Of a DNA stretch of 64,000 bases, positions 16,781-60,385 are shown one piece after another. Origin of the DNA: Eukaryota sp. TZLM1-RC (lineage: Eukaryota > Protista > Metamonada: BaSk clade); NCBI GenBank assembly GCA_040285825.1, contig JAUPSS010000007.1:2268689-2332688 (forward strand), read 5' to 3'. Numbering within the stretch: the stretch's first letter is position 1; each line of letters starts with the position of its first letter. Under the pieces are notes generated by a model. That model was not told the origin of the DNA and did no database searches. It saw nothing but the letters and a program-made list of their open reading frames with translations. The position numbers and the translations under genes were made by a program.

Positions 16781-16854
16781 CCCGAAACGTGAGCATTTTT
16801 GAAACTTCAAAATGAAAACGTGAGCATTTTTGTAAATCACCCGTTTTTTAACAC

Positions 16855-17991
16855 ATGCAACGAAGCAGAACACCCTCTCCTGTGCTTTCTGATCAGCCCT
16901 CCGAAACCTCTGGAGTATCATATCCCAAATCTACAGCTGCTGTTGCTGGTTCAATCGATCTTAAATCTGCTCCTTCACCTTACTCTTCTCCTCCTGGTAG
17001 TGTTCAGGGTAGTATTCATGAAGATGCTCTGTGGGAATTTGAAGAGGTTGAAGATGATGTAACACTTCTCCATGATGTTGATAACAGTCTTCACTCCCTT
17101 AAACAGACCCTCCTACAACACTTTGTCAACACTAAGCGCAAAATTCAACTCCGGGCATCTCAACACTTTAAAGCCCAACGTGCTCATCATGAACAGCAGG
17201 TCTCCACCCTATACGCTGACCTCGACGACTGTAAGAATTCCCTTTACGAGTACAAGGTAGATACCGAACGATCCCAGCAGATAGCCGCCAGAGCATGTGT
17301 ATTGCTGGGAAGAAGAGCCACACAGTCAAAGGAAGAGTCATTTCTCCGATTGATTCTCACTTCGTGGAGAGCTCTCTCTGCTCGTTCTTCACGCCTTTTG
17401 AATGCTGTTGATGTCTTGACTGTTCATGCTGACAACACTTTTATGAGATCTATCTTGACAAAGTGGAGGAGATTGGCAATGGAGAATAGCCGAGAAGAGT
17501 TTATTTCAAGGCTAAAACGAGATTTTTCTGAAGAAACTCAGATACTACAATCCCATTATGAAGAAGAAATTTCACATCTCACTAGTGAAGTGTCTAGTTT
17601 AAAACAGTTATTAGAAGAATCTAAGAGAGATCGTAATGAAGCTGAAAGTAGTTTTAGGGAGGCGATGCTGAGAGGCATGTCGGCGTTTCAAAAGGAACTG
17701 TCGACTGAGATGACGTCATCAGGGTCAAGAACTCGGCAACTAACGTCGATGACGTCAACTGGACCGTTTGTGAATCACGGAGGTCAGCTTCCTCCCCAAC
17801 CAGAGGCTCAACCCGAACCTCCCAAATCTACTATTGGATTGGATTCGATTGAATCTGGTATTACCCACTGTACAGGTCAAGTTGCTGTTGTTAGCGAGAA
17901 GCCAAGGAGAAGAGTGGTTAGTGGAAAGAAGGAACAGTTTGTGTCGATACCACCTGTGAAGAAAGATTCGTGTAGGAAAATTAAAAAATAG
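16855..17991 (+). CDS. POC5: centrosomal protein POC5-like
   Basis: Coiled coil with Sfi1-type centrin-binding repeats (FLRLILTSWR, FMRSILTKWRR) followed by FREAMLRGMSAF, resembling the POC5 box (AFMRGVCAL). Confidence 0.6.
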   Translation: MQRSRTPSPVLSDQPSETSGVSYPKSTAAVAGSIDLKSAPSPYSSPPGSVQGSIHEDALWEFEEVEDDVTLLHDVDNSLHSLKQTLLQHFVNTKRKIQLRASQHFKAQRAHHEQQVSTLYADLDDCKNSLYEYKVDTERSQQIAARACVLLGRRATQSKEESFLRLILTSWRALSARSSRLLNAVDVLTVHADNTFMRSILTKWRRLAMENSREEFISRLKRDFSEETQILQSHYEEEISHLTSEVSSLKQLLEESKRDRNEAESSFREAMLRGMSAFQKELSTEMTSSGSRTRQLTSMTSTGPFVNHGGQLPPQPEAQPEPPKSTIGLDSIESGITHCTGQVAVVSEKPRRRVVSGKKEQFVSIPPVKKDSCRKIKK

Positions 17992-21279: not shown

Positions 21280-23790
21280 ATAAAAAATCATCAAAGACAC
21301 AACTAAAACTACACATCCTCAACCTGCATCTCCTGCATCGAAACAGTTAATTTCTAAAAATTCTGAAATTTTAACAAAAGAAGAAAGTCAATCAGAAAAT
21401 AATTTCACCATTCTCTTGTAAATAGAAAATACAATCCTTTTTTGCCAGTAAAGACGATTGAAAATTTTTCCAGTTCTTTCCTTTACAACTACAACAAAAT
21501 TCTCGAAATAAACCATAGCAGCCTTTCCTAAAGATCCAAGCAAGGAAAAAACAAAGGGACATGAATTATATTGGGCATGAGAATGTTCATTGACAGAAGA
21601 TATGGGCTTAGCATATTTTTTTTAAAAAATTTAATTTTATTCTAAACCTATAAATCAACATCTAATAAATCCATCTCTCCCAAAACAAAAACACTAGATG
21701 CAACTCTCTCATAGTGAGATCCAAGAGAAAGCAAAGCATCAGAAACCATCTTCAACATCCCCTTAAAAATAGAAAACACAATTCTATTTTGCCAAAACAA
21801 TCTGTTGAAATTTCTGCCAGTTCTTCTCTTTACAATCATTTCAAAATCATCCAAAAAACGTAAAGCAGTTGATGCAAGTGAACCAAAAAGGGAAAATACA
21901 AATGGATACAAATTGTATTTTGCATGCTGTAGACTGGCCAATTTGGACAAAGGTTCATTGTATTTTTGAATTTAAAATTTTCAGCATTTGAAAGGGGATT
22001 ATGAATTTCAGAATTAACAAGCCTTTCATTTGAGGCATTAAAAGGATCAACAGACATTACATCCAATAAAATGAAGCTTCCATCTAATCCAGGTAATATG
22101 ACATCACCTCTATTATTCTTATGAAAATCATTTTCAGCATCAAACAGATTTGACAACAAAGGTTCCAAGAAGGATTCAATTCTATGAGATTTACACATAC
22201 AATATAACTGGTCTCTTACAGCATCATGAACCTTGCTTCTAAAAGTAATAAAATGTTTACAATTTAACAAATGAGTAGTTGTAATTTCTCGAGAACATTT
22301 ACAAATTAAATTATGAGGTAAATTATCAGGCCAGATAAAGGAACGAAATCTCATATTCAGAGTCCAAGCAGAATCGGATAAGAGAGTACCATAAACTTGT
22401 GGAATTGTTGTTACTAAGGCAGAAGAAGTACTGTCACACATATCTTGTAAAAAGATTTGCAAAAGCGGGATTCTTTTTCTTGGCCAAGCCAAGTCTAACA
22501 TCAAAATCCAAGCTTTCAAAAATCTTTGACAATTTTTGTTGAAGCTTTTTACAGCAAAACTGTAAATTAAATAGAGATCGGTTTGGAATTTCTTGAATTG
22601 ATTGAGGAAAACATTTGGTCCAAATTTGTGGCGGTAATTTTTCAAGTTCACAAGATAACTCATACAAATAGGGACTACAATTGGGGACTAACAGATGAGA
22701 ATCATCAGGAAATCTACGAGAAAATTCATAAATAAAATTTTTGCCACCACCCAAGAATGCTGATTGACACAAAATTGAAGATTTAGTAAAACCAATACCA
22801 CCCAAATTTGCTGAAGAAAATAAATGGCTTTTCAACATTCCTGGTTCTACATCCAATAAATCAGCAAAAAATTCTGTTCTCAATGAATTAAAAGAACGAC
22901 AAAAATCTAATGCTATGGAAGGAGCACAAGATCTCAAAATGTGGGTTATTCTCCCAGTGTAGCAAATTTTAAGCATGAAAAATTTAATATGCTTTTCTAT
23001 ATCTAAAGAAGAAATTGAATCAAGTTCAATTTTCATTTTTTCCAAAATAACTTGCAATTCATTCTGAATTTGAGGCACATTTCCTAACCAACAACCAAGG
23101 AACTTAAAAGCATCACTACTATAATTAGTAAAAGGTACAATAGAATATTTATACAATAGAATACTTAGCATATTTAGCAATTTTGTATTTTTCGCCAGCA
23201 AGAAGAGGATCATTGACATCTGAATTAATGAAATGTTCGTTAAAAGAATAACAAGGGTTTACGGACATGGCAGCTGAAGTAGTAAAACTTCCATTTAAGC
23301 TGGGAACAATCAAATCAACTCTTGTCAGACCCATAGAAGCTCTGTTGCAGGGCGTACTATCAATATTGGCGTCTTCAAGAATTAATGTTGAAAGCAAAGG
23401 CTCTGAAAAAGAATCTACTCGATATGATTTACACATTACATAAATTTGGTCCCTAGCGTTATTATTTACCTTGCTTCTAAATGTAATGAAATTTTTACAG
23501 TTCAAAAGATCAGTAAACTAAAGAGGTTTACCACATTTACCTATTGAATGATTGGGTAAATTGTTTGGTCAAAGAAAACAACGATTACGCATGTTTGAAA
23601 GCCATTCATTGTTTTCTACAAGAAGTGCATAAACGGAAGGAATTTGAGTAACTAAAGCAGCAGCGGAACTATTTCAAAAATCTTTTCCACAATTTCCGAA
23701 AATGTGATTTTCAGTTTTAGGCAAGCCCAGTCTTGCTCCATAATTGAAGTTTTCATACAATTTAACCAGAAAAATACAAATAACATCTAC
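21280..23790 (-). mobile_element. RLE-2 non-LTR remnant split by a younger RLE-1 insertion (21619-23163)
   Basis: Flanks join into ...GEKYKIAKYAKPISSVNE..., matching 46707-47891. Confidence 0.85.
21619..23163 (-). mobile_element. 5'-truncated RLE-1 non-LTR retrotransposon with 12-bp TSD
   Basis: Nearly identical to the 3' part of 35543-37541; TSD cttagcatattt at 21607-21618 and 23164-23175; T-run/A-run 3' tail. Confidence 0.9.
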
Positions 23791-25975
23791 CTGATTTTGA
23801 GAACAACGATCAACCAGTATGTCATTGATGGTCTTTGAATGCTGAAACTGAACAATCATAGTAAGAATACCTACTCTATAGTCATATTAAAATATTCACC
23901 AAACACATGTATGAAAACTAAATTTTAAAAACCAGACTTGACCCACAACATCTTGATTTGGTTGCTTTATTGATATGGACTATCTTATACAATTGAACAG
24001 AAAATTAAATTCTGTTTATCAGAGGTTAATAATGGATATGTAAAGTTCCACTAATTTTCAAAACGAACCCAAGGCAAAATCGACAGGAAAAAACTAATAC
24101 CAATGAAATTTTTGAATCTCATTTTTCAGACACAAATTGTTCAATTCTTCAAGTCAAATAACTGTAATTTCAAAGACAATGTTATCCAACAAGTTTTTGT
24201 TCAATAAACAATTCAAAAAGCATCTACATGATTGTGAGAATAACGCATGCCTGTCTTGAACTCTGATAAATCTATTCATTTCTATCAGCAGCTATGAGTA
24301 TAAGAAATAAGGTCTTCATATCTTCGACAACTTCTTGGTTTTGTTCAGGATTTTCAATGGAGAACAGAAAGAAAGAAATTTGATAAGAAATTGTCAATCG
24401 ATAGTAAGATTTTGAGTGTAACTGAAGAAAACAATCAACACCCGGAAAACCGTTTTGAAGAGTACCCTTACTCTTATTTACCCTTGTTTGACGTAATAGT
24501 GATATGACAATTCGGACTCATAGTGGAGCAAGAATTGGTTTAGAAAGATCAAATCATATTATTCAACTATTAGGATGTCCTAAATTTGCCCAATTTTCAT
24601 TTAAGATTGATCCCAATTGTAATATGAAAACATAATTCCAAAAACTATTGACAAAAACCATGAAGTTGAATAAGATCAGGACGTATTTAATAAATAAGTG
24701 GCTTCATGGTTCATTTAGTAATTCGTTTTGGTAATTCTTTTCCAAACCCATCCACCTCCCAAGGACAACACCAACTACTACTTATCTTTTACAGTGGATT
24801 TCATCCTGAATGCCCACAAGACAGGGCTCTTGTTTCTACATCGGAAAATTCTCTACTTCCTTATAGAAATTCATTCAATATTTTCCTCAATGATTGGCCG
24901 CAGTTACAGAGATGCAATTTTATTATAGAAAAGTACTTTTTCCTTACCTTGCGTGTCGGGCTCGTCAATTGGCATTCAATGTTAAGAGGAGTTTACCTAA
25001 AAATTGTCAATCCTGAACAAAAAACTTGATTCGTGCTCATTGTAGAGCTCTGGATAAAACGATTGTTTTTACCAATTATCTTCTCTCTCTTATACCAGGT
25101 GAACCCTTGGCACCCCTAGAAGCTAGTGAAATAACAAAAGGTGAGCAACCCGAAGAAGTAGTTATTTATTCTATTCTCAAGCCCTACAGAAATTTCCATT
25201 TTATTAAATCAAAAGAAAGATTCCTTTTATTTAATACGTGTAATTTTATCTTGAATATTTTTCAAAAATTTCCTGCCACTGCATCTTTACTATCTTCAAG
25301 TGATAGAATCACCTTTTCTTCAAAGAATTGGTGAGCTTTTTCTCTTTAATCTTAAAATTACACAATACTTACTCACTTTTTTTCTCATTTGCATTGTTGA
25401 AAGAAATTTAGAATAGTACCATCAACTTTTCACACAGGTTCTAAATTTCTTGAGGTACCTTCACATGTTGTCCATTGTGAAAAAATTTCCGCTTATTGAA
25501 GAGTCATTTTCCAAAACAAAGTTTATCAAAAATCGATGTTTAAAAAGCATATTGATACAATGTCCTTACAAAAAGTTTAATATCAACAGAAAATGTTTGA
25601 AAAATAGATTTAAACAATTTTTATGAAAACTAATGGTAAAGAACTGCTTTTGACCTTTGAAGGTGAAAATAAGGACTCAGAAAACACAGATGAGCTGGAT
25701 GAACTACCGAAAAAGAAACGAAGATTAAAAAAAGAAATGAAAAGTGACCCTGATGCCAACAAAATCAGAGAAATACAGTTGAAGGGTACTAAAGAATTCC
25801 CTGTCGAAGACGAAGATATCCCGTCGAATTTTTACTTGAAAGGCCCCTCATTGAACATTGATCTGGGCCAATCTAGATTATGTGGTTACTTCTTAAGTGA
25901 TAATCAATGTGGAGTTATTCGTTGTCCAACTGACAGAAGATACATGACAAAACCTTCACCCAGTAAACACTCTCC

Positions 25976-28922: not shown

Positions 28923-30203
28923 CTAGTTTAATATCTCAGCAACCAAGGCCATTTGGTCTTCACTTATCAAATGAAGCTTGGAAAAAAAACATGCGTTTGA
29001 GATTAAGGATGTATCCAAGTGGTCTTTTGGATAATTCTGTTTGTATTTGTAACGAAAAACCGTCTGCAAATCTCCGTCATATTGTAAGTTGTAAGAAATT
29101 TCTTCAATATCGGTCAGTTCTTCATAATGCTGTTCGTGATGTGACATATGAGATGTTCAAGTGTTACAATTTTAGTTGCAAAGTAGAAGCCTTGCTGAAA
29201 CATTATAGCGATAATAATTTGTTTAATTCACGTCGAGGTGATTTAATTGCTCCTTTTGTGGATTCCTTTCAAGTTGTTGTTGATTTTACTACAGTTGATC
29301 CCTTTGCTATTATTTATCGTGGTGATGTTTTAGTTAGTTCTAATGGTCACTTGAACAAGGCTGAGGTTCGTAAACAAAACAAATATACTGAGATATTAAA
29401 TGATTTAAATAAGAACCTTTACTCGAAGTTTTCGTTGTTCCTTTTGCCTTCTCGATTTTTGGCAACATTGGACAATCTGCCTTGATTTTTCTCAATGATT
29501 TTGATAATTTATGTCGTTCATATGGAAAGAATTTTCAATGAATTTATGGAAGAATCGTATCATTTTTGCTTTGTACAGAAGTGTTCCCGAGTACTTAAAT
29601 TTAATGATGTCCAAGCTGTATAAGGATTCATCAAGAGTTGGCGTGGAGAATTTTGTTTCTTATGTGTTTTAATGTGTTTTGTTTTGTTTTGTTTCTTCGT
29701 AGAATAAATAATTCTTTTTTTAAAAAATTTGATAACCGAAGACGAAAAGAGAGCCGGTTCCGAGAGAGCCTCAACAAATTTCAAAGGCTGGCTGGACATC
29801 CTGAAAAATTCTACCTTGCTGTGGGTTCTGCTAATTTCCCTTCTCATTGCCGAAAAGTCAATTGATATGGATCAGCAAGGGCTTTTAGAAAATGGTTGTG
29901 TTATCAAAAGGACGTGAAGCACTTGTCAACCTGTGAATTTAATACAAGCAAACTATCCAGCTGTTGCATGGCCGAGAATATTAAGCAGGCTCATGGAAGA
30001 TGCGTAATTGTACTGAGTGTCAAATAGTATATGACAGAGATATTTCCGCTGCAAAAAATATTCAAATTAAAAAGAAAGCAGAATTGTGGCCGGAAAGATA
30101 CATTTGCCCATAAGCTTTGTTGAGGAAATGAAAGAAGAACCAGAGCATACAGAAACAAAAATTCTCGAAATTCTTTTGTTTTATTTTGATTTTTTTAAAA
30201 ATT

Positions 30204-33129: not shown

Positions 33130-35360
33130 ATAATTTTCTTCCAATAAATAATCTAAGTTTAACTAAACCAATTAATTTATAACTTTATCTAACGTTGATC
33201 ATGTTGATTCAGTCCCTAATTCTCACATTTCTGTTTTCTGTTTAAAAGGTATAACTGAGTCAGTCAATGGACGGACGATTTTATTTTGCAATTGTTGTAC
33301 TGCTTCAGATACCATGAGACTCCCTGTCAAAATTCCTGTCGAAACAAGCCCTACCAGTTCCATTCTTTTGTCTTTTGAATTGCGAAAATTTTATTCTCAA
33401 TTGAAGAATAATAAATGGGCCAAATCGGATTTATAGAAATTTTTTTGCAAAGAAAAAATCAACTGTACCTTCACTCAAGTTTAAAGTGGTGAGAAAAGTG
33501 TGTTCAAGAGGTCGCTATGGTTTAGCCAAGAAAGCTATTTTTGTTCTCAATTGGCCGAACCTTCAGACGAAACAATGAGGAAATTAGAAAAACTTCACCC
33601 TGTTGAAAATTTCTGTTGTCCAATCTGTAAGTTCTGGATTGATGCTCCTATTAATTCATCTGAAGTACAGGCTGCTATCATTCATCTTCCTTAAGGAAAA
33701 GCAGCAGGTCATTCTGGTATTTCATTTGATGGTCTAAAGTGAGCATGTAGAAAAGTTCCCGAAATTTGTGATGATCTTGTTGAATTTTTTCAAAATTTAG
33801 TTTGCCTCAAAAACACTCCTCCAACCGAATTATTAGCTGCTCGTTTGATCGCCTGAGTAAAACCTGGAAATGGTACGAGGCCTGATGGAATTCGTCTAAT
33901 TGCAATTGTGAATCAATTACTCGACTCTTTGCATCAATTGTTTTCAATTGTGTTTCTTCAAGGACTGAATTTTTTTGGCTCCTTTTCAATTTGGTATTAC
34001 AACAATTGAAAAGGCATCAGTTGCTGTTTTGACTTCTGATTTATTTTTTAATTCTACTAATCACTATTATATTTTTTATTTGGATTGTAAAAATGCCTTC
34101 AATTCTGTACATCGAAGTGTAGTTTATGATGTTATTCAGAAAGAATTTCCAGAATTATTCACTTATTTTTATTTATTGATGGCAAAGCAAGTGAACAAAT
34201 TTATGAATCTTCTACTCTATTCTCTTCTTCTGAACTTCAGCAAGGTGATCAGCTTGGACCATTACTTTTCTGTTTAGCAATTCACAAGTCTTTAATTCAT
34301 TTTAGTAAATATTATCCAATGTTGAAAATTGTAGGAAATATGGTTGATATCTCAATTATTGGCTTTTTTAAATGTTTTGAATAAATTTGCTTCTGACGCT
34401 TCATTTCTTACCGAAATATTGGACTTTTGATCAAAATCGACAATTGTCTCATCATTGGAAATGTCAAAGAGAGTTTAACCATTGATGCTGTTGAAATTTT
34501 TTTCAACAAACTATTTCGTAAACTATTCCTGAAATGCTTTTCGTTTCCAAGGCTGCTAACTTGGAAATGTTTCTGAAATTACCGATGGATTAAATAATGT
34601 TTTGCTGAAATTGGGTTCTCAACTTGATACAATTTCTTCTTTTGAAATAGAGAAACATAATAAGTTTTTTATCTTAAAAATTTGTTAGTTACGTAAAATT
34701 ACTCACATATTAAGAACAACTTCTCCTAATATCTCATGTGAGTTCTGCCGCTCTCCTTTAACCACTTGAGAACAAAATTTTTTGCATCTTAGATTGATGT
34801 CAATCCTGAACTAATTCGAAGTCATGTATTTTCATCATCTGATTTTGATGGTATTAATTTCAACAAATCGTCTTTTCTATGTCAAGCTGTTTCTTTTGGA
34901 GGAGGGAAGAACATTGTTTTTGAATTTTGCAACCAATTTCCTTATGATGTTGATTTACTGAATTCTACAAGTAGTAATTATTTAAGGGACCTTGAAAATG
35001 CTGTTGATTGCTTGCTCCTGACTTTTGGAGTACATGTTTCCCCGAAAAAGTACAGCAAATACCTCCTAGAACGCTAGTAAATTTGAGTTATAGTGCCAAA
35101 AAATTGCAGCAAAAATTAACAATGAGTGTTGAAGGCTTGGATTTTAATGTTCGCCTCGGCTCAGCCAAAATTGATATTCCCGCTTTCGCAAATTTTTTGT
35201 TAGATGCCCAAAATAGTTTTTCTTCTTGTTTAATTTCTTATATTCCTCAAACTTATAGTCTTCTTTTAGATGATACCACGTTTTCTTGTGCAATGCGCCT
35301 TCGATGTTTCATTTGGCCCAACAATGTGCCCCATAATTTGATTTGCAAATGTGGATAATA
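33130..35360 (+). mobile_element. degenerate RLE-3 non-LTR retrotransposon (N-terminal region, RT, start of knuckle)
   Basis: KLHPVENF, GKAAG.SG, DGIRLIAI, APFQFG, LDCKNAFNSVHR, QGDQLGP, LICKCG; many stops. Confidence 0.85.
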
Positions 35361-35542: not shown

Positions 35543-37541
35543 TTTTAAAAAAATTTAATTTTATTCTAAACCTATAAATCAACATCTAATAAATCCATCT
35601 CTCCCAAAACAAAAACACTAGATGCAACTCTCTCATAGTGAGATCCAAGAGAAAGCAAAGCATCAGAAACCATCTTCAACATCCCCTTAAAAATAGAAAA
35701 CACAATTCTATTTTGCCAAAACAATCTGTTGAAATTTCTGCCAGTTCTTCTCTTTACAATCATTTCAAAATCATCCAAAAAACGTAAAGCAGTTGGTGCA
35801 AGTGAACCAAAAAGGGAAAATACAAATGGATACAAATTGTATTTTGCATGCTGTAGACTGGCCAATTTGGACAAAGGTTCATTGTATTTTTTGAATTTAA
35901 AATTTTCAGCATTTGAAAGGGGATTATGAATTTCAGAATTAACAAGCCTTTCATTTGAGGCATTACAAGGATCAACAGACATTACATCCAATAAAATGAA
36001 GCTTCCATCTAATCCAGGTAATATGACATCACCTCTATTATTCTTATGAAAATCATTTTCAGCATCAAACAGATTTGACAACAGAGGTTCGAAGAAGGAT
36101 TCAATTCTATGAGATTTACACATACAATATAACTGGTCTCTTACAGCATCATGAACCTTGCTTCTAAAAGTAATAAAATGTTTACAATTTAACAAATGAG
36201 TAGTTGTAATTTCTCGAGAACATTTACAAATAAAATTATGAGGTAAATTATCAGGCCAGATAAAGGAACGAAATCTCATATTCAGAGTCCAAGCAGAATC
36301 GGATAAGAGAGTACCATAAACTTGTGGAATTGTTGTTACTAAGGCAGAAGAAGTACTGTCACGCATATCTTGTAAAAGATTTGCAAAAGCGGGATTCTTT
36401 TTCTTGGCCAAGCCAAGTCTAACATCAAAATCCAAGCTTTCAAAAATCTTTGACAATTTTTGTTGAAGCTTTTTACAGCAAAACTGTAAATTAAAAAGAG
36501 ATCGGTTTGAAATTTCTTGAATTGATTGAGGAAAACATTTGGTCCAAATTTGTGGCGGCAATTTTTCAAGTTCACAAGATAACTCATACAAATAAGGACT
36601 GCAATTGGGAACTAACAGATGAGAATCATCAGGAAATCTACGAGAAAATTCATAAATAAAATTTTTGCCACCACCCAAGAATGCTGATTGACACAAAATT
36701 GAAGATTTAGTAAATCCAATACCACCCAAATTTACTGAAGAACAGAAATGGCTTTTCAACATTCCTGGTTCTACATCCAATAAATCAGCAAAAAATTCTG
36801 TTCTCAATGAATTAAATGAACGACAAAAATCTAATGCTATGGAAGGAGCACAAGATCTCAAAATGTGGGTTATTCTCCCAGTGTAGCAAATTTTAAGCAT
36901 GAAAAATTTAATATGCTTTTCTATATCTAAAGAAGAAATTGAATCAAGTTCAATTTTCATTTTTTCCAAAATAACTTGCAATTCATTCTGAATTTGAGGC
37001 ACGTTTCCTAACCAACAACCAAGGAACTTAAAAGCATCACTTCTATAATTAGTAAAAGGAACAATAGAATCGTTTATCACAAGATCTTGAGCACAGAAGC
37101 CAATCAGAAGGCATTTGCTCGCATTAAGATAAAGCCCAATATTTTCATATGAATTGGCAATTTCTTGAGCAACCAATTCTAGTAAATCAAATGAACCAAT
37201 CAAGGATATATCATCCATATAAGCAACTATTTTTACAGAAGGGTATTTTTGCTTGATGCTATTTAAAGTTTTGTGAATAGCTAAACAAAACAATAACGGG
37301 CCTAAAGGATCACCTTGCTTCACACCAGAAGATGATTTAAGACCAAATGAATTAAAAATTAAATCTGATTCTTTCTTATAAAAATGGTAGAAAAAACTCG
37401 ATAGCTCAGGAAAATCAGATTTAATAACTTCAAAAATTGCTTCTCGCTTTACAGAATTAAAAGCATTTTTAAAGTCGAGATTAAAAATAAAATTATTTTC
37501 CTCTGCATTAAAAAAGGTATCAGAGGCAATAGCAGCAACAG
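35543..37541 (-). mobile_element. young 5'-truncated RLE-1 non-LTR retrotransposon (CRE/SLACS-like) with uninterrupted RT-knuckle-RLE frame and 10-bp TSD
   Basis: Open frame to 35572: LDFKNAFNSVKR, GVKQGDPLGPLLF, AYMDD, FLG, LGGIG, CKC...HLLNC, RSKVHD, RGD...LDV...KFKKY, PFVFSLFG; TSD ttagttattt at 35533-35542 and 37542-37551. Confidence 0.93.
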
Positions 37542-42009: not shown

Positions 42010-42139
42010 GACAGTGGATCCAATAGTCTAACCTTGGCTTGAGGAAGAATTTACAAAAAACATTAAAGAGGTCACAAATATTTAGAGTTCTGAAGAATAA
42101 AGAATTTTTATTGGCAAATAATAACTACACAATATTCTG

Positions 42140-42279
42140 TGGTTTTCATTTGAAATGCATACTTTCGTCAAGCATCATTCAAACTTATTCCAAGAACTTT
42201 CATTCTTGGTGAGATCGTCCACAGACGTTCTAGAATCCTCGAATAATTGGCCACCAATCTCAGTGAGCCCATTTCTCCT
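42140..42279 (-). ncRNA. putative Fanzor omegaRNA scaffold (type C)
   Basis: Directly after the locus C stop. Hairpins CCAAGAAT-GAAA-GTTCTTGG, CGTC-TGTG-GACG, GGCTCAC/GTGGCC and AC-GAAA-GT; stems TTATTC/GAATAA and GAAATG/CATTTC. Confidence 0.65.
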
Positions 42280-44133
42280 CTAGAACAATACGTAGCTTTG
42301 AAGCTGGTTTCTTTGTGGTCTCTGGAACGCTTCTGGTCTTGTTCCATAGTAGTGCTCACTAATTGCAATTTCTAGCTGATTTAGTGATGCAGAAATGTCT
42401 CTAGACCATACTTGATTACATTCCGGACAACTGAAATAGGCGTTGTGAACTTTAACTTCACCATCAACTTCTCGATAGATCTTTTGGTGTAGCATCTTAC
42501 AGCAGTTCACCTTTGCAGATGTCGTATATTCATCTCCGATCTTCACATTAGCAAATGAACATTGTAACAACTTGAGAAACGCCTTACGTGGAGTTTTCAC
42601 TTTTTGACGTGATGTACCACCACCTCCATTGCCAAACCACACCTTTACTTCTCGACCGTTTGCAAATTTTTTCACTTTGTTGATAATGGAGCTGAATCTT
42701 TTCTGTTTTCTTATAAAGAAGTCAAATGTGTGTCTCCTCAATGCTTTTCGAGCACTCAGATATAATTGCTGCTTGAGCAATGATCATCTTACGTTATTAC
42801 CTTCATAGTCCTTATAGTCACCGATAGTTGATATTTCAAGCAGATAATGGTTCAATTTCTGCACGTCATAAACATCTATTGATGAGTGGGTCAGTGAAGC
42901 GGAGTGATTGATTTTTCGTTGCTTTGGTGCCAAGAAGATATTGGATACGGTCGGCCCTGAACGTGTTCCAATACTGGAACCACATAGATTTGAGTGGTTG
43001 GGGTCGATGGCCCAGAACACCATTTCCGTTTCGTCATCAGGTGCCTGCCACTCAGTAGCTTTTGGTTTCTGGCGAGGTCTTGGCCGTTCAACCTTGGCTT
43101 GCAAGGTATGTTTTCTATTCCGAGTGGTTTCATAGTAATCAAGTTCCCCTTTGGATCTCTTATCAGCCAAGGCTTCTCCGGACAATCTCACTCGTGTTGC
43201 TTTGGGGTGCGGTTTGAAAGTTATACGGACACTATCACCATTAGAAGACATGGTGTAGTCATTAGCTTTTGTTTTAAACAATAAATAAGGGTTTTTCAAA
43301 ATTGTTTGTGATGTGTTTTTGGAGATAAAATGGTTGAGAACCCATGTGGAAAAGGGGACAAAAGCAGGCTTCAAACTAGCGATGGGAGTGAGTCTATGTC
43401 GTCTAAAGTTATATGGAAAGGCTTGCTCCAGGTCGTTTTGGATTGTTAAGCCGCAACGAAAGATGTAGGTACTGTTCTCTTGATTAAGAGTCACTCTTCG
43501 AGAAGAAAGAAGAGTGTTGTACCTTTGAGGATCACCAACCAAAAAGTTAAACAGAGTAAGAGCCATGGTATGGTGAGTGTTGAACCAAAAAAGAAGAGGT
43601 TCACGAAAGTTCGTGCTATTGTGAAGAACAGAACCAGCATAAGTGGCTGGTGCAGGGCAGTTATAACCTACCGCATACGAGCGGAAGAAGTTAAGCTTCC
43701 ACGACACAAGTCCATCAGCAAGAAGCTGCTGGTAGTTGCCTTGCAGCTGGCGGCACTTTGCATCCACTAGTTGTTGTAGAGGCCTACTAGTGGGTAGTGC
43801 ATGATTACGACCTGTTCGTGACAAGAACAAGACAGCAAACGGCCATGATGTAGAGATTCGCTCGAGCTTCTCATACACATGGCCTTTGCCAGGTCTGTTA
43901 AATGGATGTCTGACTTCTGGCTTAGAGACCGCCACAAAGTCAAGACACTGGATCCAGAATTGATGCTGAGTCAGGAAATGACTGTCTTCAGGGAAGCGCA
44001 CAGCAAAAACTCTGGCCAGCAAACTGCCGAGGTGAGCCATGGTGGTAACCTTGGTCAGCTGTCCATCAATGTAATCACACACTGGCCGCTCAAAGAACTG
44101 ATGAAGGGAGCAGGCACGTGCCCATGACTGCAT
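42280..44133 (-). CDS. Fanzor RNA-guided RuvC endonuclease (locus C), 617 codons, single in-frame TGA at codon 450
   Basis: RuvC-I VFWAIDPN, bridge-helix region LRRHTFDFFIRKQKRF, VWFGNGGG...GDEYTTSAKVNCC (Fanzor-type shifted Glu), CPEC...WSRDISASLN, RPEAFQR. The two ORFs are in the same frame across TGA 42784-42786. Confidence 0.9.
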
Positions 44134-45248
44134 AGTCCTTACTGAAAACGGAAGGTGCAGACAATCAAAAATGATTGATTTCTCAGTTTCAGTTACTTTT
44201 AAAATTTGGTTTATTTTCAACTCCTTACATCCACAAAACAATGAAACATGCACAAACTGATAAATAGATACATTTATAATAGATACTGGACATGCTTTAA
44301 GCATTTTCTTTCCTAAAAATAGTAAACTGATGCGAAATTTGACGAAATTGTTGTTAGTCAAAGCAGTTGTTCGTTTAATCAACGGTGTTTGTAGATTCAA
44401 TAAATTCGTAAAGTTTCACAATGTAATTCCTTTATTCAGAACACACATGTTACCAAGGGAAGTCACAACACCCGTTTCTTCCTTACCATTTCTTTCCCTC
44501 TTTGACGAAGAACCTTTTGCTCTTCGTTCAACTATATCTGAGTTTGCCATGGATCTTTGTGGAACTGTTGGCTTTTCTATTATAGCGATTATAGGTTTCG
44601 TTTAGTGCGCTCACACATTGACTATAAAACATTGAATCCCATAAAATAGACTAACAAAAGACAGTCTGTAGAGACACTACTGGCTATTCTTGAGTCTAAA
44701 CTCGAGTCTATTGCAGATCGTCCATCCCAAGCTGTGCCAACAACTTCTGCTGTGTCACCCCTTTCAGCTGCACTTCTTGTCTTGAAACTAGACATCTGAA
44801 TACTTATTATTACCTTGTCTCTCTACTTCGCCCTCTTCACCCTCTTTCTACTCATCTTTCTTCCATAGAAGATGTTCCTCCTGTCTTCACTTGTATTACC
44901 ATCACTTATCAATATACACCCTTACACCTCTGGTATCGTTTGTTCACTCTCTACGAATCAACTCACTCCAATCTTAATCTACTCCACTCTAACCTACTGC
45001 TGATATACATGAACTTCTAAAGTCTAATGAGCAGAAGATTATTGAACTTAATGAACTCCAATTGAAACTGCATTGAAGACACTTGTAATGTTAGTTACAT
45101 GGCTTCCTTGCAGAGATTGATTTTGACTAATTTCATATTAATGTAGTGTGATACGATAATAAGTCTGAAGACGTCCACGCTGCTATGAGTGAAACCTATC
45201 CCCTTGATTTCAGGTTCGGACTCTTGAGAAAGAAGATTTTCTGGTTAA

Positions 45249-45302
45249 TAACCTATTTCTACCTATAAATAACCTAAAGTAACCTATAAATAACCTATAA
45301 CT
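45249..45302. repeat. short tandem repeat (about 10-11 bp, AACCTATAAAT-like)
   Basis: taacctatttctacctataaataacctaaagtaacctataaataacctataact. Confidence 0.6.
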
Positions 45303-45605
45303 AATAGTTCCAAAATAAAATATTATCGATTCATGTTTTATTATAGTGTTCGTTCAAGTGTTGGTAAAAAGAATAGTGTTGGTGAAAGAAGTGGTGTGGT
45401 GAAAGAGGACTTTATAATTAAGGTGAAGATTGAGGAAGATTTACCTGTTCAATGAATAGAATCTGATACTCCTCTTTTAAAATTAACACAGTAATGTTAT
45501 TAATTCTAGGATCTGACATATATGTCATATATGGTGTAGAAGTTTAGCTAAACTTCAATTCTTATCACATAAAGAAAGTATGTGTTGCTTCAAGTAGAGC
45601 AAAAA

Positions 45606-46439: not shown

Positions 46440-47930
46440 ATAAATATTTAAAACTTACTTTACTTTGAATTGCCAACTATAAGTTTGATTGTTTTATTGC
46501 TGAATGTGACATTGAGAAACACATCAAATTTTTTATTTTAAAAATTTGTTATTCTGGAAAATTCACTCATATTTTAAGGTCAACTCCCCCATCGGTATCT
46601 CTCAATTCTTGCAGATCTTTTAACAAACTTCGAGTCAAATTTTTTTTCTTCTTTATAAGAAGTAAATGAATCTTTAATTCGAAGTCATGTATTTTGTTCA
46701 GCAGCTTTGGGTGGAATTGGACTCACCAAATCTTCGATTCTGTGTAAAGCAGCATTTTTGGGAGGTGGTAAAAATTTTGCTTTTGAATTTTTCCAAAGGT
46801 TCCCTTTTGATGTTCATCTGATCAATGGTGAATCAAATTTTTACTTGAATCAACTCCAATTTGAATTAGAAAATTTGCCAAGTGATATCTGGATTCAGTG
46901 TTTTCTTCCAAATGTTCAAGAAATTCCCACCCGATCACTTCCAAATTTACGTTTTTGCTTGAAAAAGCTTCAGCACCATCTGGTTAAATTATATGAAGGC
47001 TTGGATTATGAAGTAAGACTTGGCTTGCCCAAAACTAAAAATCCCGCTTTCGGTAATTTTTTAAAGGATATTCGTGATAGTTCAGCTGTTGCTTTAGTAG
47101 CTCAAGTTCCCTCTGTTTATGGACTTTTGTTAAAAAACAATGAATGGCTTCTAAACATGCGTTTTCATTGTTTTCTGTGGCCAAACAATTTGCCCAATCA
47201 TTTAACTTGTAAATTTGGTAAACCTCTTTTGTTTACTCATCTTTTGAACTGTAAACATTTCATTGCGTTTAGAAGCAAAGTGCATAATAACGTCAGGGAC
47301 CAAATTTATGTAATGTGTAAATCATATCGAGTACATTCCTTTTTAGAACCGCTGTTATCAAAATTAATTCTTGATGATCCCAATATTGATAGTACGCGTT
47401 ACAACAGAGCTTCTATGGGTCTGACTAGAGAAGATCTAGTTGTTCCTGGTTTAAATGGTAGTTTTACTATTTTGGACGCCATGTCTATTGACCCTTGTAA
47501 TTCCTCTAACGAACATCTCATTGACTCGGATGTAAATAATCCTCTTCTTGCAGGCGAAAAATATAAAATTGCTAAATATGCGAAACCCATTTCCTCGGTT
47601 AATGAAACTTCTCATGCCCAATATAATTTATGTCCATTTGTTTTTTCTTTGCTTGTATCTCTAGGTAAGGCTGCTATGGCTTTCCTTGAGGATTTTGTTG
47701 TAGTTGTAAAGGAAACAACTGGAAGAATTTTCAATCGTGTTTACTGGCAAAACAGGATTGTATTTTCTATTTTTAAGGGAATGGTAAAACTAATTTCTGA
47801 TTCACTATCTTCTTTTGGAAAATTTTCTGAATCTTTAGCAATTAATTGTTTTGATGTAGGGGAGGCAGGTTTTGAGGATGTGGAGTTTTAATTGTGTATT
47901 TCATATTTGTTGTTGAATAAAAATTAGTAG
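46440..47930 (+). mobile_element. RLE-2 non-LTR retrotransposon, 5'-truncated (ORF 46707-47891)
   Basis: LGGIGLTK, HLLNCKHF, RSKVHNNVRD, DAMSIDP, KIAKY, CPFVFS. Confidence 0.9.
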
Positions 47931-48026: not shown

Positions 48027-49573
48027 ATGAATAACGCTCTACAAACCACAACTGTGGGAGCGTCTGCCAACCAGTTTTTTGGCTCAGAAGCAGGATAATC
48101 TATGGAAAGGCAATTCGAAGTTCTCGCTAGTATTGGAGCTCATGCTACTCATTTAGCACGACCCTCTATACTCCAATACCCAGAACACTCTATGTGGCTT
48201 ACTCAAAGCCAGTTCTGGTGCCTCTGTTTCGACTTTGTTTTTGAAAGAGAACCTAAACAAAAAAACCATTATAGAACCAGCCTGTGGATTTTCTAGCGCT
48301 GCAACATCTTGTTCAGCACTTTTGGCTATGGCGCCCACTGAATGAAACCACGTCAGCTAACGGTGTGAGAATCTGGTGCCACTCCAGTCTGCTTGGCAGT
48401 CTAGCCATTCAACTGTAGGAAGCTTTCTGCCAACTGTTGGCTGACAGCCTGTTGTGTGGAAACACAATTGTTTCAACAGCTTTGACCAGAATCGTCCCAA
48501 AAAGTACACTGGGTGTGTACTTAGAGATCTTCGGCCGGTGATACCATTTCACAATGGAATGCACCAACATATTTTGACTCACTGGCTACATAGGACAGTA
48601 AATGCCTATATTGGTGGAATTCAAAATATGTTGGAAACCTCAATGAGAAATAAACTATTTATCATAAATGTGCAAACTGCAGCCACAATCTGTCAGTCAG
48701 GACTGAACATTTTATCTTTTTCAGAAGATAAATGCCCTGCGGTTATGAAAAGGCACTCTCTCGCCTTTATCCAGTTGGTATCAATGCTTCTGCAGTTTGA
48801 ATAAAAAAGCCCAATCTAATTTACAGTGTTCGGCGGTGCGGGGTGTACGGGTTCGTGCTGGGTGCGCACCCCGTACCCTCAGTGCGTGAAGAAAGTGGTG
48901 TGGTGCGGGTACAGGGTGCGTTGTTCTATTTAACAATAAAAGAAATTACATATAATTTATACTAGATCAATAAGGTATTAGTCAATAGTCAAATCATCTA
49001 ACATTGGTCAAATCATCAAAAAATGGATCTACAAACCACTCAGCTTCAGATACTTCATCCTCAGACTCAACTTCATCAACCTCACAATCTTTTGATGTCT
49101 CCGATCCCAAATTTTCTTCAAGCTCATAATTGCTATCATTTTCTTCTTCGATGATGCTTTGGACACCCATTCCGTCTCCTAAATAGTCTACTGCTAGTAC
49201 TTGTCTAGCTAACTTCTCATTGTGCTTGATGAAGACTAATTTCCGAAGTTTTTCTGACAAGATTCTGTTTCTCTTCTTAGTATGAATAGCTTCATACTGA
49301 GACCAGTTTCTCTCACAGGCTGAAGCTGAAGCAACTTGGGCTAGAATTCTTTGCGCAACAAACTGCAGTATCTTTCATAGAACGATCTATCATGATGACG
49401 GAAGGGTAAATAACGCTAAGTTCGATTGCCCTCGATGTCAGACCAACTGGTCTAAGGACATCTTAGCCTCCAGAAATCAGCTGGAGATTACAATCAGTGA
49501 GTATTTCACTGGTACTAGGTCAGAACCATTCCAAAGACCAAGGCGTGTGAGACGTCTAAGGAGACAGCAGTAG
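48027..49573 (+). pseudogene. Fanzor locus D, central part replaced by a hAT remnant
   Basis: YPEHSMWLTQSQFWCLCFDFV aligns with locus C FPEDSHFLTQHQFWIQCLDFV; 49371-49573 reads CPRCQTNWSKDILASRNQLEITISEYFTGTRSEPFQRP, matching the locus C C-terminus. Confidence 0.85.
48824..49370 (-). mobile_element. hAT DNA transposon 3' remnant
   Basis: hAT dimerisation domain ILAQVASASACERNWSQYEAIHTKKRNRILSEKLRKLVFIKHN; terminus CAGTGTT at 48824 with GC-rich subterminal repeats. Confidence 0.85.
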
Positions 49574-53119: not shown

Positions 53120-54780
53120 TTCAATGGAAAACTTATAAATCAACATCTAAATAATCCATCTCTCCCAAAACAAAACAACTAGATGCAACTCTCAAAATTT
53201 GATGATGAAAATACATGACTTCGGATTAGTTCAGAATTGACATCAATCAAAGATGCAAAAAAATTGTTCTTAAGTGGTTAAAGGTGCGGCAGAACTCACG
53301 TGAAATATTAGGAGAAGTTGTTTTTAAAATGTGAGTAATTTTCCCTGAGTAACAAATTTTTAAGATAAGAGACTTAATATGTTTCTCTATTTTAAGTGAA
53401 GAAATTGTATCAAGTTCAGAGCCAAATTTCATTAAAAAATTATTCAATTTATCCATAATTTCGGGAACATTTTTAAGCCAGCAACCAAGGAAACGAAAAG
53501 CATTTCAGGAATAAGTTTACCAAAGGAATTTCAGCATGATCAATGGTTAATCTATCTTTCACATTTCCCGACAATTGCCGATTTTGAGCAAAAGTCCAAT
53601 ATTTTGGTAAAATAGTGGAGCCTTAGAAGCAATTTTATTCAAAACATTTAAAAAAGCCAATAATTGAGATATCATCCATATTTCCAACTATTTTCAACAT
53701 TGGATAACGTTTGCTGAAATAAATCAAGGACTTGTAAATTGCTGAACAAAACAGTAATGGCCCAAGGATATCACCTTATTCAACTCCAGAAGAAGAAAAG
53801 AGTGTAGGATTTATAAATTAGTTCACTAGTTACGCCATAAAATAAATAGAAATAGCTGGATAATTCTGGAAATACTTTTTGGTTAACAACATTAACTGCA
53901 CTTCGATGTACAGAATTAAAAATATAATTCTGATTATTAGAACCAATATATAAATCAGAAGTGAATGCGGAAACTGAAGGACCATCAATTGTTTTAACTC
54001 CAAATTTAAAAGGTGCTAAAAAATTTGGAGCCTTTGAAGCAACACGATTGACAACAATTGATGCAAGGAGACTATGTAAGAGAGTAAAAAAGAGAAAAAA
54101 AGCAAAGATAGTAATTGATTCACCAATGGCAATTAGACGAATTCCATCTTGCTTCTTCTCATTTTCAGGTTTTATCAAGGCGATCAGGCGAGCAGTAAGT
54201 AATTCAGAAAGAGGAGTAATAAATTTTAGGCTTACAACAACAGAAATTTTCCGCAGGGTAAAGTTGTTCCAATTTCATCACTGTTTTATCAGAAGGTTCA
54301 GCCAATCGAGAAGAAAAACGGCTTTCTTAACTGAACCGTAACGACCCTTTAGACACATTTTTACAACCAATTTAGATTTATGTGAAGGCGAAGTTGAATT
54401 TCGCGATTTACTTGATTTTTTCAATTGAGATTTTTCTTTGTAAAAAATTTCCAAAATTCGTCATGATCCAATTAATATTCTTCAATTGGAACAAAATTTA
54501 GCAATTCATAAGACAAAGAAATCGAACTGGCAGGGCTTTTTTTGACAGCAATTTTGACAGGGGGTCTCAAGGTATCTGAAGCAGTACAGCAATTGCAAAA
54601 TAAAATCGGTCGACCTTGACTGACTCAGTTAGAGCTTTTGAACAAAAAATACAATGGAAAGAATAAGGGACTCGACCATCGTGATCAACGTTAGTTAAAG
54701 TTGAAAAATTAGAATATTTTCCTGAGGAGAATTTATTCCGAACAAACCAATTTTTAACTTCAAAGGAGTTTTTCCTTTAA
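53120..54780 (-). mobile_element. degenerate RLE-3 non-LTR copy with a short RLE-1 3' fragment at its left end
   Basis: Reverse-complement similarity to 33130-34850; DGIRLIAIGE, APFKFG, KICYSGKITHILK. Confidence 0.85.
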
Positions 54781-55719: not shown

Positions 55720-58075
55720 ATTTGTTTCGTTAAATACGAACTGTCTGCGTCTTGGCCTGTCGTCTTGCTCAATAATTTATGCTGCTGCATCCGCAGATAG
55801 GTCACTGGTTGTATCATCAACAGTTCTGGTATCAGTGTATGGACTTTGTGATGAAGGTCAATCCTCCAGTCCAAGCAATCTTTGAGAACCATCAGGAAGT
55901 TTACAAGGCCTTCTCTTATGCGAATGACCCAACCGAATGACCTGTATACCCTCTGGGTTGTGATAAAAGGACTGAAAACTGGTGTCATTCTGTCATCCGG
56001 AGCTTTTGCGCATTTCAAATGTCGACCAGCTTCTGTTAAACTATGACAGATGGCCCAGTTGTATAAAAGCTCAACTTCTATAAAACCATGGCAGTGTTTT
56101 TTGACTGTGAATCTCCGAAAAAATACGTTGTTGCCGTTCTCAAAGATGCAGCCGTTTCTGAGCAGTTACTGGGTTGGTGTGAGCAACATCATGCTTTCAA
56201 CCTTGATTTATTTAACCAACAAGTAGGTGACCTTGCCGAGTTCAAAGCCCTCATGGAACGCTGAACCAATGACCTTTAGCTTCGCCGCCAGCTTCCGTAT
56301 TTTGTCCTTCCTCGAGAATGAGGCGGGTGAAAAAATGAAAAGGCGTGCTCTGGCTCCCTCCGCAAGTTACTCTCCTGGCTTTATTTTATTCAGCCAGATA
56401 TTGACAAAACACCTTTTACGTTTGAACCCAGACAAACAATCTTTGAGGAACCCATTCAAACATTTCAACATGAAAAATGTTTCCCCATAGACCATTGCAT
56501 CGGATGGAGTACAAGTCAGATTAACTTTTTGGGCAGCCCTAAAAAAACCAAAAACCGCCGCACAGCCAGAGAATTCGCAGCCGATAAAACCAGTGGCGAA
56601 TACGATATGCTTGCAAAGAGTCGAAAGCGAAACTGCGAACTTCAACAACAGGTTTGTCCCAGGCAATTTCCAAAAACTGATGACGCCTACGAATACTCAG
56701 TTTGTGCAAATAATCTTACCCAGAAAAATTTGTGTGGCTATTCAATTGGATAAAGAAAAGATGATAACAGTGTTGACCATCAACTTTTGGGCCTTGTTTT
56801 AAATTCAAAGGCAAGGAAGATCATTCATCCACTGGTCTAGACCCATGTATCATCTAAGTTGCTATTTTGTACAGGATTTCCGCGAATGTCTGTGTGAAAT
56901 AGCAACGCCATTGGCATTGGTATTGACAAAGGAAGAAATCAGGAATCCCGGCTTCCGTCCGAGAACTATACTAGACCAATTGCTGATAAATGGAGATTGC
57001 TGAGTCCTGCGCCGCAACAAGTTTGACTTCTTTAAAAAAAGCAAAAATTGACTAATAATATTTATTGAAAAAATACACTGGTGCCTGTAATTAGTCTCAC
57101 TGAGACTAATTTTGTACTCCGTATTTTCAATGTTTAGGACAATATTAGTTTCAGTGAAACTAATTCTGCACTGAGACTAATTCTGCACTGAGACAAAATT
57201 TGTCCTGATGTTCTGAAGTAATAAAAACACTTTATTTGGTCGAAATATTCCAATACATAGCAATCTTCATCATCTCCCTCCAAGATTGAGGAAGATTGTT
57301 GTCTGTTTCATTTTCATCAGTAGAGGGAGATTCATTAGCAGCATTATAAGACGAAGGATTGCGGAGCTCAACTTTCGCAAATGCTCAAAGGATAAGGGAC
57401 CCTGAAAAGATATTGTTCATTAACAAAGGGTAGGAGCTACTGAAAGGAACAAACTAGACAGAATACAATCTTTGATATGTGTTTAATACCACACTATAGT
57501 TATGTTTTCGAAGTTTCATATGTGAATGCTCCATGAAAAAGAGGTCTTGTTTACTGTTGAGCTATTACATCCATTGCAAACTTTATCAAATGGAATAATT
57601 TTAAACAATATTAGTCTCACTTGAGGAGTTTGGGACACCTCTTGAACAATATTAGTCTCAGTGAGACTAACTGTGCACTGAGATTAATTTTGCACTGAGA
57701 CTAATTACAGGCATGAGTGTAAATAGCTAGTGAAAGAGAAACAAAAATTTGGTTTGGAAGTGGGGGTGATAAGCTTTCAAGACAAGCTCTTAAGACCCCA
57801 GAGAATCTCTTTTAGAAGGAGATTCAGAAACATTTTACATATGTGAAGCCTAATGGAGATGAATTCTACACATCTGCCAAAACTAATTGCTGTAAGGTAT
57901 TGAATCAAAAATTGTATCATGATAATGGGAGTTAAACAATGATAGGTTTGTTTGCCCTCAATGTCAGACATTTTGGTCGATAGACATCTCAGCCTCCAGA
58001 AACCAGCTGAAGATTGCCATGTGTGAGCATTGCTACAATAAAAGACCTAAGGCGTTTTGGAAACCCCATAGATAA
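55720..58075 (+). pseudogene. Fanzor locus E, 5'-truncated, degenerate, split by a MITE
   Basis: HPQIGHWLYHQQFWYQCMDFV; RRALAPSASYSPGFI; TIASDGVQVRLTF; NLCGYSIG; KWRLL; LRRNKFDFF; after the MITE IWFGSGG...GDEFYTSAKTNCC...CPQCQTFWSIDISASRNQL...KRPKAFWKP. Confidence 0.85.
57076..57719. mobile_element. MITE (644 bp), Tc1/mariner-type TA TSD
   Basis: TIR CACT(GG/CA)TGCCTGTAATTAGTCTCA at both ends, TA at 57074-57075 and 57720-57721, subterminal TGCACTGAGACTAATT repeats; removing it rejoins the Fanzor E sequence. Confidence 0.9.
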
Positions 58076-58209: not shown

Positions 58210-60385
58210 AATGCAAGGGATTATTTGAAGCCTTTTCAATTTGATATTAAAACCAATGAAGGTGCTTCTGTTGCTTCAATGTCTTCAGACCTTTTTTTCA
58301 TTAGTCAGCAACATCATTATATTTTCAATTTGGATTTTAACAATGCTTTTAGTTTCGTAAAGCGTGACTGTATTTATGAAGCGCTTTTTCAAGAAATTCC
58401 TGAACTTTCTGTTTATTTATATTTATTCAATGGAAATAAGTCGGACTTAAATTTTGACACCTTTACCCTTGAATTTTTTTCTAGTGTGAAACAAGATGAC
58501 CCTCTTGGCTCATTCTTTTTGTTTGGCTCAACATAATATTATTAAAATTACCCAAAAGGAATTCCCTGAATGAGGTATTGTTGCATAATTGGATGACATT
58601 CCTATTATCGGTTCTTCTGAAAGCATTTGTAGTGTTTCTGAAGGCATTGCAGCGAAATACAACGAAATTGGGTTAGCTTTAGATCCATCGAAATGTCTCT
58701 TGATTTGAAGAAAAAAACAAGCTTCATTGATTAATGGTGCTCAAATTCCTTTTATTTATTATGATTGTTGGCACCCTAAGGCTTATATGTTATGATTAGA
58801 AAATAAATCAACTTTTCCTCATTCACCTTTCCTCATTATTTTTATCTCAACCACTTTTGCAACCTACGGCATCATGACCAACAAGCGTTTAAATTTCTTG
58901 GATGTTGGCTTGGTAATGTGGATGAAATTTATTCCCAGTTAAACCATATATTGGAGAACTTTGACAAGGATCTTGGCTTTATTACTGCATGTGACATTGA
59001 AAACACATCAAATTTTTTGTTTTCAAAACTTGTTATTCTGGATAACAAACTCATATTTTAAGGTAAACTTTCCCCTCACTATCTCTTAATTTTTACAGAC
59101 ATTTCGACAAACTTTGGGTTTTTTCTTTATTAGAAGTAAATGAATCTTTGATTCGAAGTCATATATCTTGTTTTGCTGAGTTGGGTGGAATTGGTTTCAC
59201 CAAATCTTCAAATTTTTATGTGAAGCAGCATTTTTAGGAGGTGGTAATTTTCATGAATTTTTCCAAAGGTTCTCTTATGATGTTCATCTGATCCATTGTG
59301 AATTAAATTTTTACTTAAATCAACTTCAAACTGAATTAGAATATTTGCCCAGTGATATCTAGATTCAGTGTTTTCCTCAAAATATTCAAGAAATCCCCGA
59401 CCCATCATTGACAAATTTACGTTTTTGTTTTGAAAAATCTTCAGCACCAGGTGGTAAAATTATATGAAAGCTTGGATTATGAAGTAAGACTTGGTTTGGC
59501 CAAAACAGAAAATCCTGCTTTCAAAAAATTTCAAGTGACATTCGTAATAGTTCTGCTGCTGCTTTAGTTACTCAAATTCCCTCTGTTTATGGATTTCGTT
59601 GAAAAGACAATGGATGGCTTCTAAACATCCGTTTCGTGGTTTTCTTTGACCAAACAATTTGCCCAATTATTCAATATGTAAATGTTGTAAACCTCTTTTG
59701 TTTACTCATCTTTTGAACTGTAAACATTTCATTACATTTAGGAGCAAAGTAAATAATAACGTCAGGGACTAAATTTATGTAATGTGCAAATCATTTCGAG
59801 TAGATTCCTTTTTAGAGCCTTTGCTATCAAAGTTAAGTCTAAATGACCCTAATATTGATGGTACACGCTATAACAAAGCTTCTATGGGTCTGACAAGAGG
59901 TGATTTGGTTGATAACGGCTTAAGTGGAAGTTTTACTATTTTAGATGCCATGTCCATAGACCCTCGTAATTCTTCTAACAAACATTTCATTAATTGATAT
60001 GTCAAAAATCCTCTTCTTGCTGGAGAAAAATATAATATTACTAAATATGCGAAACTCATTTTCTCAGTTAATAAAAATTCTCATGTCCAATATAATTTAT
60101 GTTCCTCTGTTTTTTCTTTGCTTGGCTTTCCTGGAGGATTTTGTTGTAGTTGTAAAGGAAACAACTGGAAGAATTTTCAATCGTGTTTACTGGCAAAACA
60201 GGATTGTATTTTCTATTTTTAAGGGAATGGTGAAATTAATTTCTGATTCACTCTCTTTTTTTGGGAAATTTTCTGATTCTTTAGTGAATAATTGTTTTCA
60301 TGTAGGGGAGGCAGGTTTTGAGGATGTGGACTTTTAGTTGTGTATCTGATGATTTCTTATTCCTTGTTCGATAAATAAATTCAAA
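58210..60385 (+). mobile_element. degenerate RLE-2 non-LTR retrotransposon
   Basis: KPFQF, LDFNNAFS, KQDDPLG, FLGCWLG, RGDL...DAMSIDP, WQNRIVFSIFKG. Confidence 0.88.
58766..58874 (+). mobile_element. solo LTR related to the 27503-28922 element
   Basis: First about 60 nt match the reverse complement of the 92-bp LTR (tgttggcaccctaaggcttatatgttatgattagaaaataaatcaacttttcctcatt); TG...CA ends; TSD TGAT/TGAC. Confidence 0.8.

Follow-up and report, generated by a model that had tools for sequence, protein, structure and literature searches.

The locus studied here lies in a window of 64,000 nucleotides of genomic DNA from strain TZLM1-RC, that is, Skoliomonas litria, and all positions below refer to this window unless another locus is named. 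A preliminary description, made from the letters of the window, recognized on its minus strand a near-intact Fanzor one base away from an open frame, and held it to be the best candidate here for resurrecting a compact programmable nuclease. This raises the question of what the gene is, what interrupted it, and whether it stands alone or belongs to a repeated family. A literature search found no paper that joins Fanzor with Skoliomonas or with any metamonad.

Reading frame and its interruption

Translation of the minus strand from 44133 to 42280 gives 617 sense codons and then a terminal TAG, with a lone internal stop, a TGA at codon 450 (42786–42784, in the context NNVR*SLLKQQLYL), so that the otherwise open frame reported at first is confirmed. 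The start ATG at 44133 agrees with the N-termini of the relatives P0012, P0014, P0017 and P0019. The claim that there is no frameshift also stands, since both halves are collinear with the uninterrupted relatives P0017 and P0019: residues 5–437 of the piece before the stop (the N piece) align to P0017 4–427, and residues 1–155 of the piece after it (the C piece) to P0017 434–588. The window copy is annotated only as the 449-aa N piece (P0001) and, as assembled, has no uninterrupted coding sequence, owing to the TGA at codon 450. Long host open reading frames in the window terminate in TAA, TAG and TGA, the neighbouring class-V aminotransferase gene in TGA, which shows that the standard genetic code applies and that the TGA at codon 450 is a stop.

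The same codon is CGA (Arg) in all nine paralogs that keep the site, and Arg is also found at this position in the annotated fragments P0005 and P0011 and in the relative P0012 of GEM-RC1. The C of codon 450 sits in a CpG (AGA CGA to AGA TGA), and the paralogous codons indicate that the stop arose by a C-to-T change at this CpG, which turned Arg into a stop (R450*). The stop had first been read as a TGG turned into TGA, an inference that rested on distant copies within the window; the check for TGG in other copies that was proposed with it returned CGA in every paralog keeping codon 450, and a repair to W450 would put in the wrong residue, because the ancestral one is Arg. The TGA is the single internal stop, as had been stated, but it is not the only lesion: 11 private amino-acid changes are present and the native stop at codon 610 is lost. 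At that codon the TAG of the family reads CAG in the window copy (Table 1), which makes the window frame 8 codons too long; by comparison with the paralogs, the family protein ends at residue 609.

Table 1. Features of the Fanzor1 locus and of the element that carries it, in window coordinates.
Feature	Position	Strand	Basis or remark
Whole repeated element, ~3.4 kb	42134..45517	-	blastn against paralogous loci; left end approximate
5' shared part, non-coding, putative leader or promoter	44134..45517	-	80–96% identical between copies, with indels
Fanzor1 reading frame	42280..44133	-	617 codons + TAG, one interruption
RuvC-I Asp, D377	43003..43005	-	Aligns with SpuFz1 D383 through the A2 profile
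N379	42997..42999	-	Aligns with SpuFz1 N385 through the A2 profile
In-frame TGA, codon 450, ancestrally CGA (Arg)	42784..42786	-	CGA in 9/9 paralogs keeping the site
RuvC-II Glu, putatively rearranged, E535	42529..42531	-	Aligns with SpuFz1 E541; E in 46/48 family rows
Zinc-ribbon (TNB) region, C544, C545, C569, C572	42418..42504	-	Sub-cutoff PF07282
RuvC-III Asp, D579	42397..42399	-	Aligns with SpuFz1 D606; D in 46/48 rows
Codon 610, CAG in the window copy	42304..42306	-	TAG, the family stop, in 9/10 paralogs
3' non-coding tail and right end	42134..42279	-	Ends in the conserved motif at 42160–42137

Assignment to Fanzor1

Neither PDB searches with the single N and C pieces nor a search of the PDB with a profile of eight skoliomonad sequences only (A1) gave a match, and Pfam returned no family for the N piece. 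The Pfam profile PF07282 (Cas12f1-like_TNB) matched the window copy at E = 3.8e-5 with 24.2 bits, under its cutoff of 26.3, which the relatives P0019 and P0026 pass. An exhaustive profile search recovered 272 relatives, and only a profile of 50 sequences from this search (A2, both window pieces included), not the shallower searches, linked the family to Fanzor1. The A2 profile matches SpuFz1 (8gkh) at E = 6e-79 over profile positions 11–570, nearly the whole length, GtFz1 at E = 2e-72 and PpFz1 at E = 4e-68, and its match to TnpB, Cas12f, Fanzor2 and TranC is confined to the C-terminal ribbon.

Predicted structures point the same way. An AlphaFold2 model of the uninterrupted relative P0019 (pLDDT 87.8; pTM 0.82) has Fanzor1 structures as its top seven Foldseek matches (E = 3e-13 to 1e-9; TM ~0.5), and for the model of the window's own 449-residue N piece (pLDDT 83) the sole PDB matches at E < 1e-3 are PpFz, SpuFz and GtFz (E = 3e-7 to 2e-5). 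With the Fanzor1 fold, full-length homology, catalytic residues and zinc ribbon all found, the window gene is, on its profile matches and modelled fold, a Fanzor1, which upholds the earlier identification as a Fanzor and narrows it. Membership of Fanzor2 was considered and rejected: ApmFz2 (9b0l) ranks 27th against the P0019 model (E = 0.018; TM 0.23) and in sequence it matches only at the zinc ribbon.

In SpuFz1 the residues D383, N385, E541 and D606 coordinate Mg2+ or bind metal (PMC10432273), and the window residues aligned with them are listed in Table 1. The rearranged RuvC-II of Fanzors carries a non-acidic residue at the position of the canonical Glu and an alternative Glu downstream (PMC10530073). 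In the comparison with SpuFz1, E535 aligns to the Fanzor-type Glu, and a strand ~34 residues upstream of it (VWFGNGG, with G501 and N502) aligns with VVMGDWS, a pattern that would fit such a rearrangement. Three of the four zinc cysteine columns are nearly invariant in A2, and the ligands in the window frame take the form CC...CxxC, not CxxC...CxxC. All the RuvC and zinc positions that had been called intact are indeed so (AIDPN with D377, GDEYTTS with E535, SRDIS with D579, C544/C545 and C569/C572).

Compared with the solved Fanzor1 structures, namely SpuFz1 (8GKH, 9CEU), GtFz1 (9CER) and PpFz1 (9CF0), the window family is alike in overall fold and full-length profile match, has the same active-site residues (the DPN motif, the E in D-E-[YF]-x-T-S and the R-D in RuvC-III), is of similar size (~600 aa) and is likewise carried by a eukaryotic element that occurs in multiple copies and ends in structured 3' non-coding sequence. 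It differs from them in an identity of only 10–14%, in a first zinc pair of adjacent cysteines (CC) instead of CxxC, in the 1.4 kb of non-coding DNA on the 5' side of the element, in its metamonad host and in the nonsense codon of the window copy. SpuFz1 loci are flanked by 30-nt inverted repeats (PMC10432273), whereas none was found at the window element. What the family has in common with prokaryotic TnpB, Cas12f and Fanzor2 (ApmFz2, 9B0L) is the RuvC-II, zinc-ribbon and RuvC-III region, where the profile matches at E = 1e-9 to 1e-5 on its last ~70 positions, with nothing outside the C-terminal region; the REC lobe is much larger in the window family.

The repeated element and its copies

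The gene had been placed between host genes and away from any transposase. There is no transposase gene, but the Fanzor1 frame proved to be the 3' 55% of a repeated element of ~3.4 kb, and the left neighbour of this element is other repeated DNA. The right end is sharp, the shared DNA stopping at 42134–42136 in L001, L003 (twice), L004, L005 and L009. The left end is approximate and backed by two junctions; the shared DNA extends to 45517 in L005 only, a contig loose end lies at 45517, and similarity is lost near 45420 in L001 and near 45388 in L006. In the 1.4 kb 5' part an 8-copy consensus has no open reading frame above ~120 aa and the window none of note; neither a transposase nor a second open reading frame was found there in the window or in the consensus, and nothing there resembles the N-terminal exonuclease or protease portions of the larger Fanzor fusions in the same genome. 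No terminal inverted repeats were found in the element, the two usable left junctions have no motif in common that could be a shared TAM, and Rfam gave only sub-threshold miRNA noise, outside the element.

The 146-nt 3' tail closes with ATGCAT-N7-GAAA-N2-CACAG (42160–42137, minus strand), a motif with one match in the window against 0.02 expected. It is common to four subfamilies in three strains (the window, L003, L007, L011 and L012), at L007:6911–6934 in GEM-RC1 and at L011:4861–4884 and L012:4864–4887 in TZLM3-RCL, ~80–135 nt past the stop codon in the subfamilies of these two strains. Across subfamilies whose proteins are 30–50% identical, its form is ATGCAT-N(3-12)-GAAA-N(1-3)-CACAG. Single-sequence folds of the element's 3' 287 nt and of its terminal 67 nt have z-scores of -3.3 and -3.4 respectively, and every subfamily has a terminal hairpin with UAUGCAU as its 3' arm, the outer stem differing in sequence with its pairing kept. 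RNAalifold predicted no pairs on four diverged 3' tails, because the alignment of these tails is poor. The 3' tail is probably the 3' part of an omegaRNA scaffold, with a guide that would start just past CACAG. L008 has a second, isolated motif at 8673–8696, separate from the aligned copy and 67 nt upstream of where an E2F/DP-like gene starts.

Of the seven complete right ends known from other copies of the family, five lie at host start codons; the window copy is an exception, its right end converging on the 3' end of the class-V aminotransferase gene. At right ends of the family (L001:5885–5900, L003:9959 and 15889, L004:6720–6766 and L005:6565) and of the TZLM3-RCL subfamilies (L011:4884–4890 and L012:4887–4933), the ATG of a same-strand host gene follows 4–46 nt beyond the end, and the genes that start there include MINDY4-like, ankyrin, LBP/BPI, PDCD2_C and others. 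On the other side of the window element, at 46500–47000, lies a different repeat that occurs six times in the window with 67–82% identity (again at 22537–23003, 34643–34954, 36461–36927, 53200–53390 and 58978–59471), so that the left neighbour of the element is not a plain host gene.

The family comprises at least 11 copies. We aligned ten paralogous copies with that of the window (loci L001–L006 and L008–L010, L003 holding two); the copies examined are those with annotated protein fragments, and loose contig ends show further ones. All ten are dead: each has 3–10 lesions, which are frameshifts, deletions or stops. A majority consensus of the 11 copies gives an open frame of 609 codons, from which the window copy deviates at 26 sites (15 synonymous, 11 non-synonymous), all of them substitutions and none an indel. 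Its distance from the consensus is ~1.4%, compared with 2.8–6.4% for the other copies, and its independent terminal branch is the shortest in a maximum-likelihood tree (0.016 versus 0.036–0.094). Its dN/dS is ~0.21 (binomial P ~1e-4 against the site-count expectation), that of the other copies 0.41–0.86 (Fisher test of window versus rest, P = 0.037). The private replacements (T5A, K73E, H157Y, S182F, H234D, H241Y, T242N, T323A, R328K, N468H and M537T) all fall at alignment columns that vary within the clade. By these sequence measures the window copy is the youngest and best preserved of at least 11 Fanzor1 copies in S. litria TZLM1-RC. It would stem from the latest insertion, made by a master lineage on which purifying selection acted, and have decayed very little afterwards.

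Several observations concern the older copies and remnants. The two copies of L003, at 7969–9959 (+) and 15889–17263 (-), are inverted and ~6 kb apart; both have TGA as codon 435 and the same sequence on the right flank; they are a segmental duplication and not two insertions. The oldest copy, L009, is split at 6006–7786 by a 1.8 kb insertion, in which a gene encodes a hAT dimerisation domain (PF05699). The annotated TZLM1-RC proteins P0002–P0011 are gene-model artefacts in which the models skip lesions. With the pieces and the TZLM3-RCL Fanzor proteins as queries, tblastn located five or more additional Fanzor-like remnants, of greater divergence, within the 64 kb window (4355–6463, 24936–25955, 29719–30125, 48039–49531 and 55734–58072).

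The sister strain TZLM3-RCL has naturally uninterrupted relatives, a status verified for two reference genes: P0019 (KAL0227877.1), of 592 aa, whose 90% cluster includes another seven members of 592 aa, and P0017 (KAL0227833.1), of 604 aa, whose cluster includes three of 605 aa. They belong to the same clade as the window copy and are collinear with it over the full length, at 29–30% identity in the N part and 50–53% in the C part, and they have in common with it the motifs AIDPNH, GDE[YF]xTS and SRDISAS and the right-end motif ATGCAT..GAAA..CACAG, placed there ~80–110 nt past the stop. They differ in subfamily and strain and have shorter 3' tails. The GEM-RC1 gene P0012 (L007:5001–6799) was rejected as an intact relative: a 29-nt 'intron' in its gene model covers up a frameshift. 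The window copy is the best-preserved copy of its family so far, as the choice of it for resurrection had implied, but the case for resurrecting it is weakened by these uninterrupted relatives.

Standing of the stop and meaning of the locus

Taken together, we consider it likely that the window copy is the youngest member of a transposase-less, repeated Fanzor1 family, in which the gene once encoded an RNA-guided endonuclease of ~609 residues and was broken at codon 450. The main challenge to this reading is that the TGA could be an error of assembly or base-calling, in which case the real locus would have CGA and the gene would be an intact, possibly active Fanzor1 of 617 aa. Nanopore R9.4 reads with Illumina correction underlie the assembly (PMC11316075), and a CpG in a multi-copy repeat is the hardest kind of site to correct. 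For read evidence we used Logan contigs from three DNA runs, all of which have G at 42786 (the CGA state) and none the letter of the window; the sole source of the T at 42786 is the published assembly. However, wherever else the window copy has a private letter (42775, 42732, 42524, 42499, 42306 and others), the same contigs show that of the paralog consensus, and some of those over codon 450 have flanks other than its own. They are therefore collapsed paralogs, uninformative on the window locus, and contigs of this kind drop rare variants. Mis-correction in repeats, moreover, draws a copy toward the family consensus and not away from it, and 26 private differences made up of substitutions only, with no indels, are unlike raw Nanopore error, all of which makes an erroneous TGA unlikely. 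One further run, X3, labelled as another organism of the same study, yielded low-depth contigs 98–99% identical to the family over window positions 42475–45194, and the proteome of that organism has no such close relative. The S. litria and GEMRC Nanopore libraries received barcodes from the same kit (PMC11316075). Read bleed-through is one possible cause of the X3 contigs.

Two other readings accept the sequence as it stands. Were the TGA decoded, as Trp, as selenocysteine or by programmed read-through, a full-length protein would be made; the frame downstream is open and conserved for 167 codons, and the preliminary description had aligned the stop to W in distant copies within the window. 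An open downstream frame is, however, simply accounted for by the youth of the copy, host genes in the window, that of the aminotransferase among them, end at TGA, and the position is CGA (Arg) in nine paralogs and R or another residue other than W in the relatives. On host stop-codon usage and paralog codons we reject decoding as Trp, and decoding in any form seems extremely improbable to us. Domestication by the host, which would make this a Fanzor-derived gene and not a copy of a mobile element, could draw on the lack of both a transposase and inverted repeats and on the purifying selection seen on the lineage leading to the window copy. Such selection is also what a master-copy lineage would leave, and at least 11 dispersed copies at unrelated loci share ~3.4 kb that includes the non-coding ends, ten of them decayed; we regard domestication as very unlikely.

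Under the preferred reading, that of a young copy in a repeated family, the ancestral protein of ~609 residues would have had WED and REC lobes, a zinc ribbon and a split RuvC whose glutamate is of the 'rearranged' type. If it worked as SpuFz1 does, it may have bound an omegaRNA made from the element's 3' end, and may have cut DNA that matches a guide beginning just past the right end. In the window copy the C-to-T change at the CpG has made Arg codon 450 (CGA) into TGA, and the predicted product of the assembled sequence is a 449-residue fragment with RuvC-I only, which cannot cut because it is without RuvC-II, RuvC-III and the zinc ribbon. A more far-reaching reading, tentative and on balance doubtful, is that of a Fanzor1 lineage without a transposase that was active very recently, is confined to skoliomonads and has a conserved right end that comes to lie, repeatedly, a few bases before host start codons, with the window copy carrying Arg at 450 (or as it is, if the T is an error) being a working RNA-guided nuclease. 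In that case the window copy would be an experimental handle on start-codon-proximal targeting.

For those who seek a compact nuclease, the uninterrupted multi-copy relatives of TZLM3-RCL are a better start than a repaired pseudogene, and the target of any repair is corrected to Arg (CGA) and not Trp at codon 450, with the natural C-terminus at residue 609. The right-end motif gives a precise predicted boundary between scaffold and guide, relevant to the placement of these elements beside start codons. The locus adds a divergent Fanzor1 clade, from Metamonada, to the known proteins, and the window copy would preserve a dated picture of a family on which selection acted until very recently.
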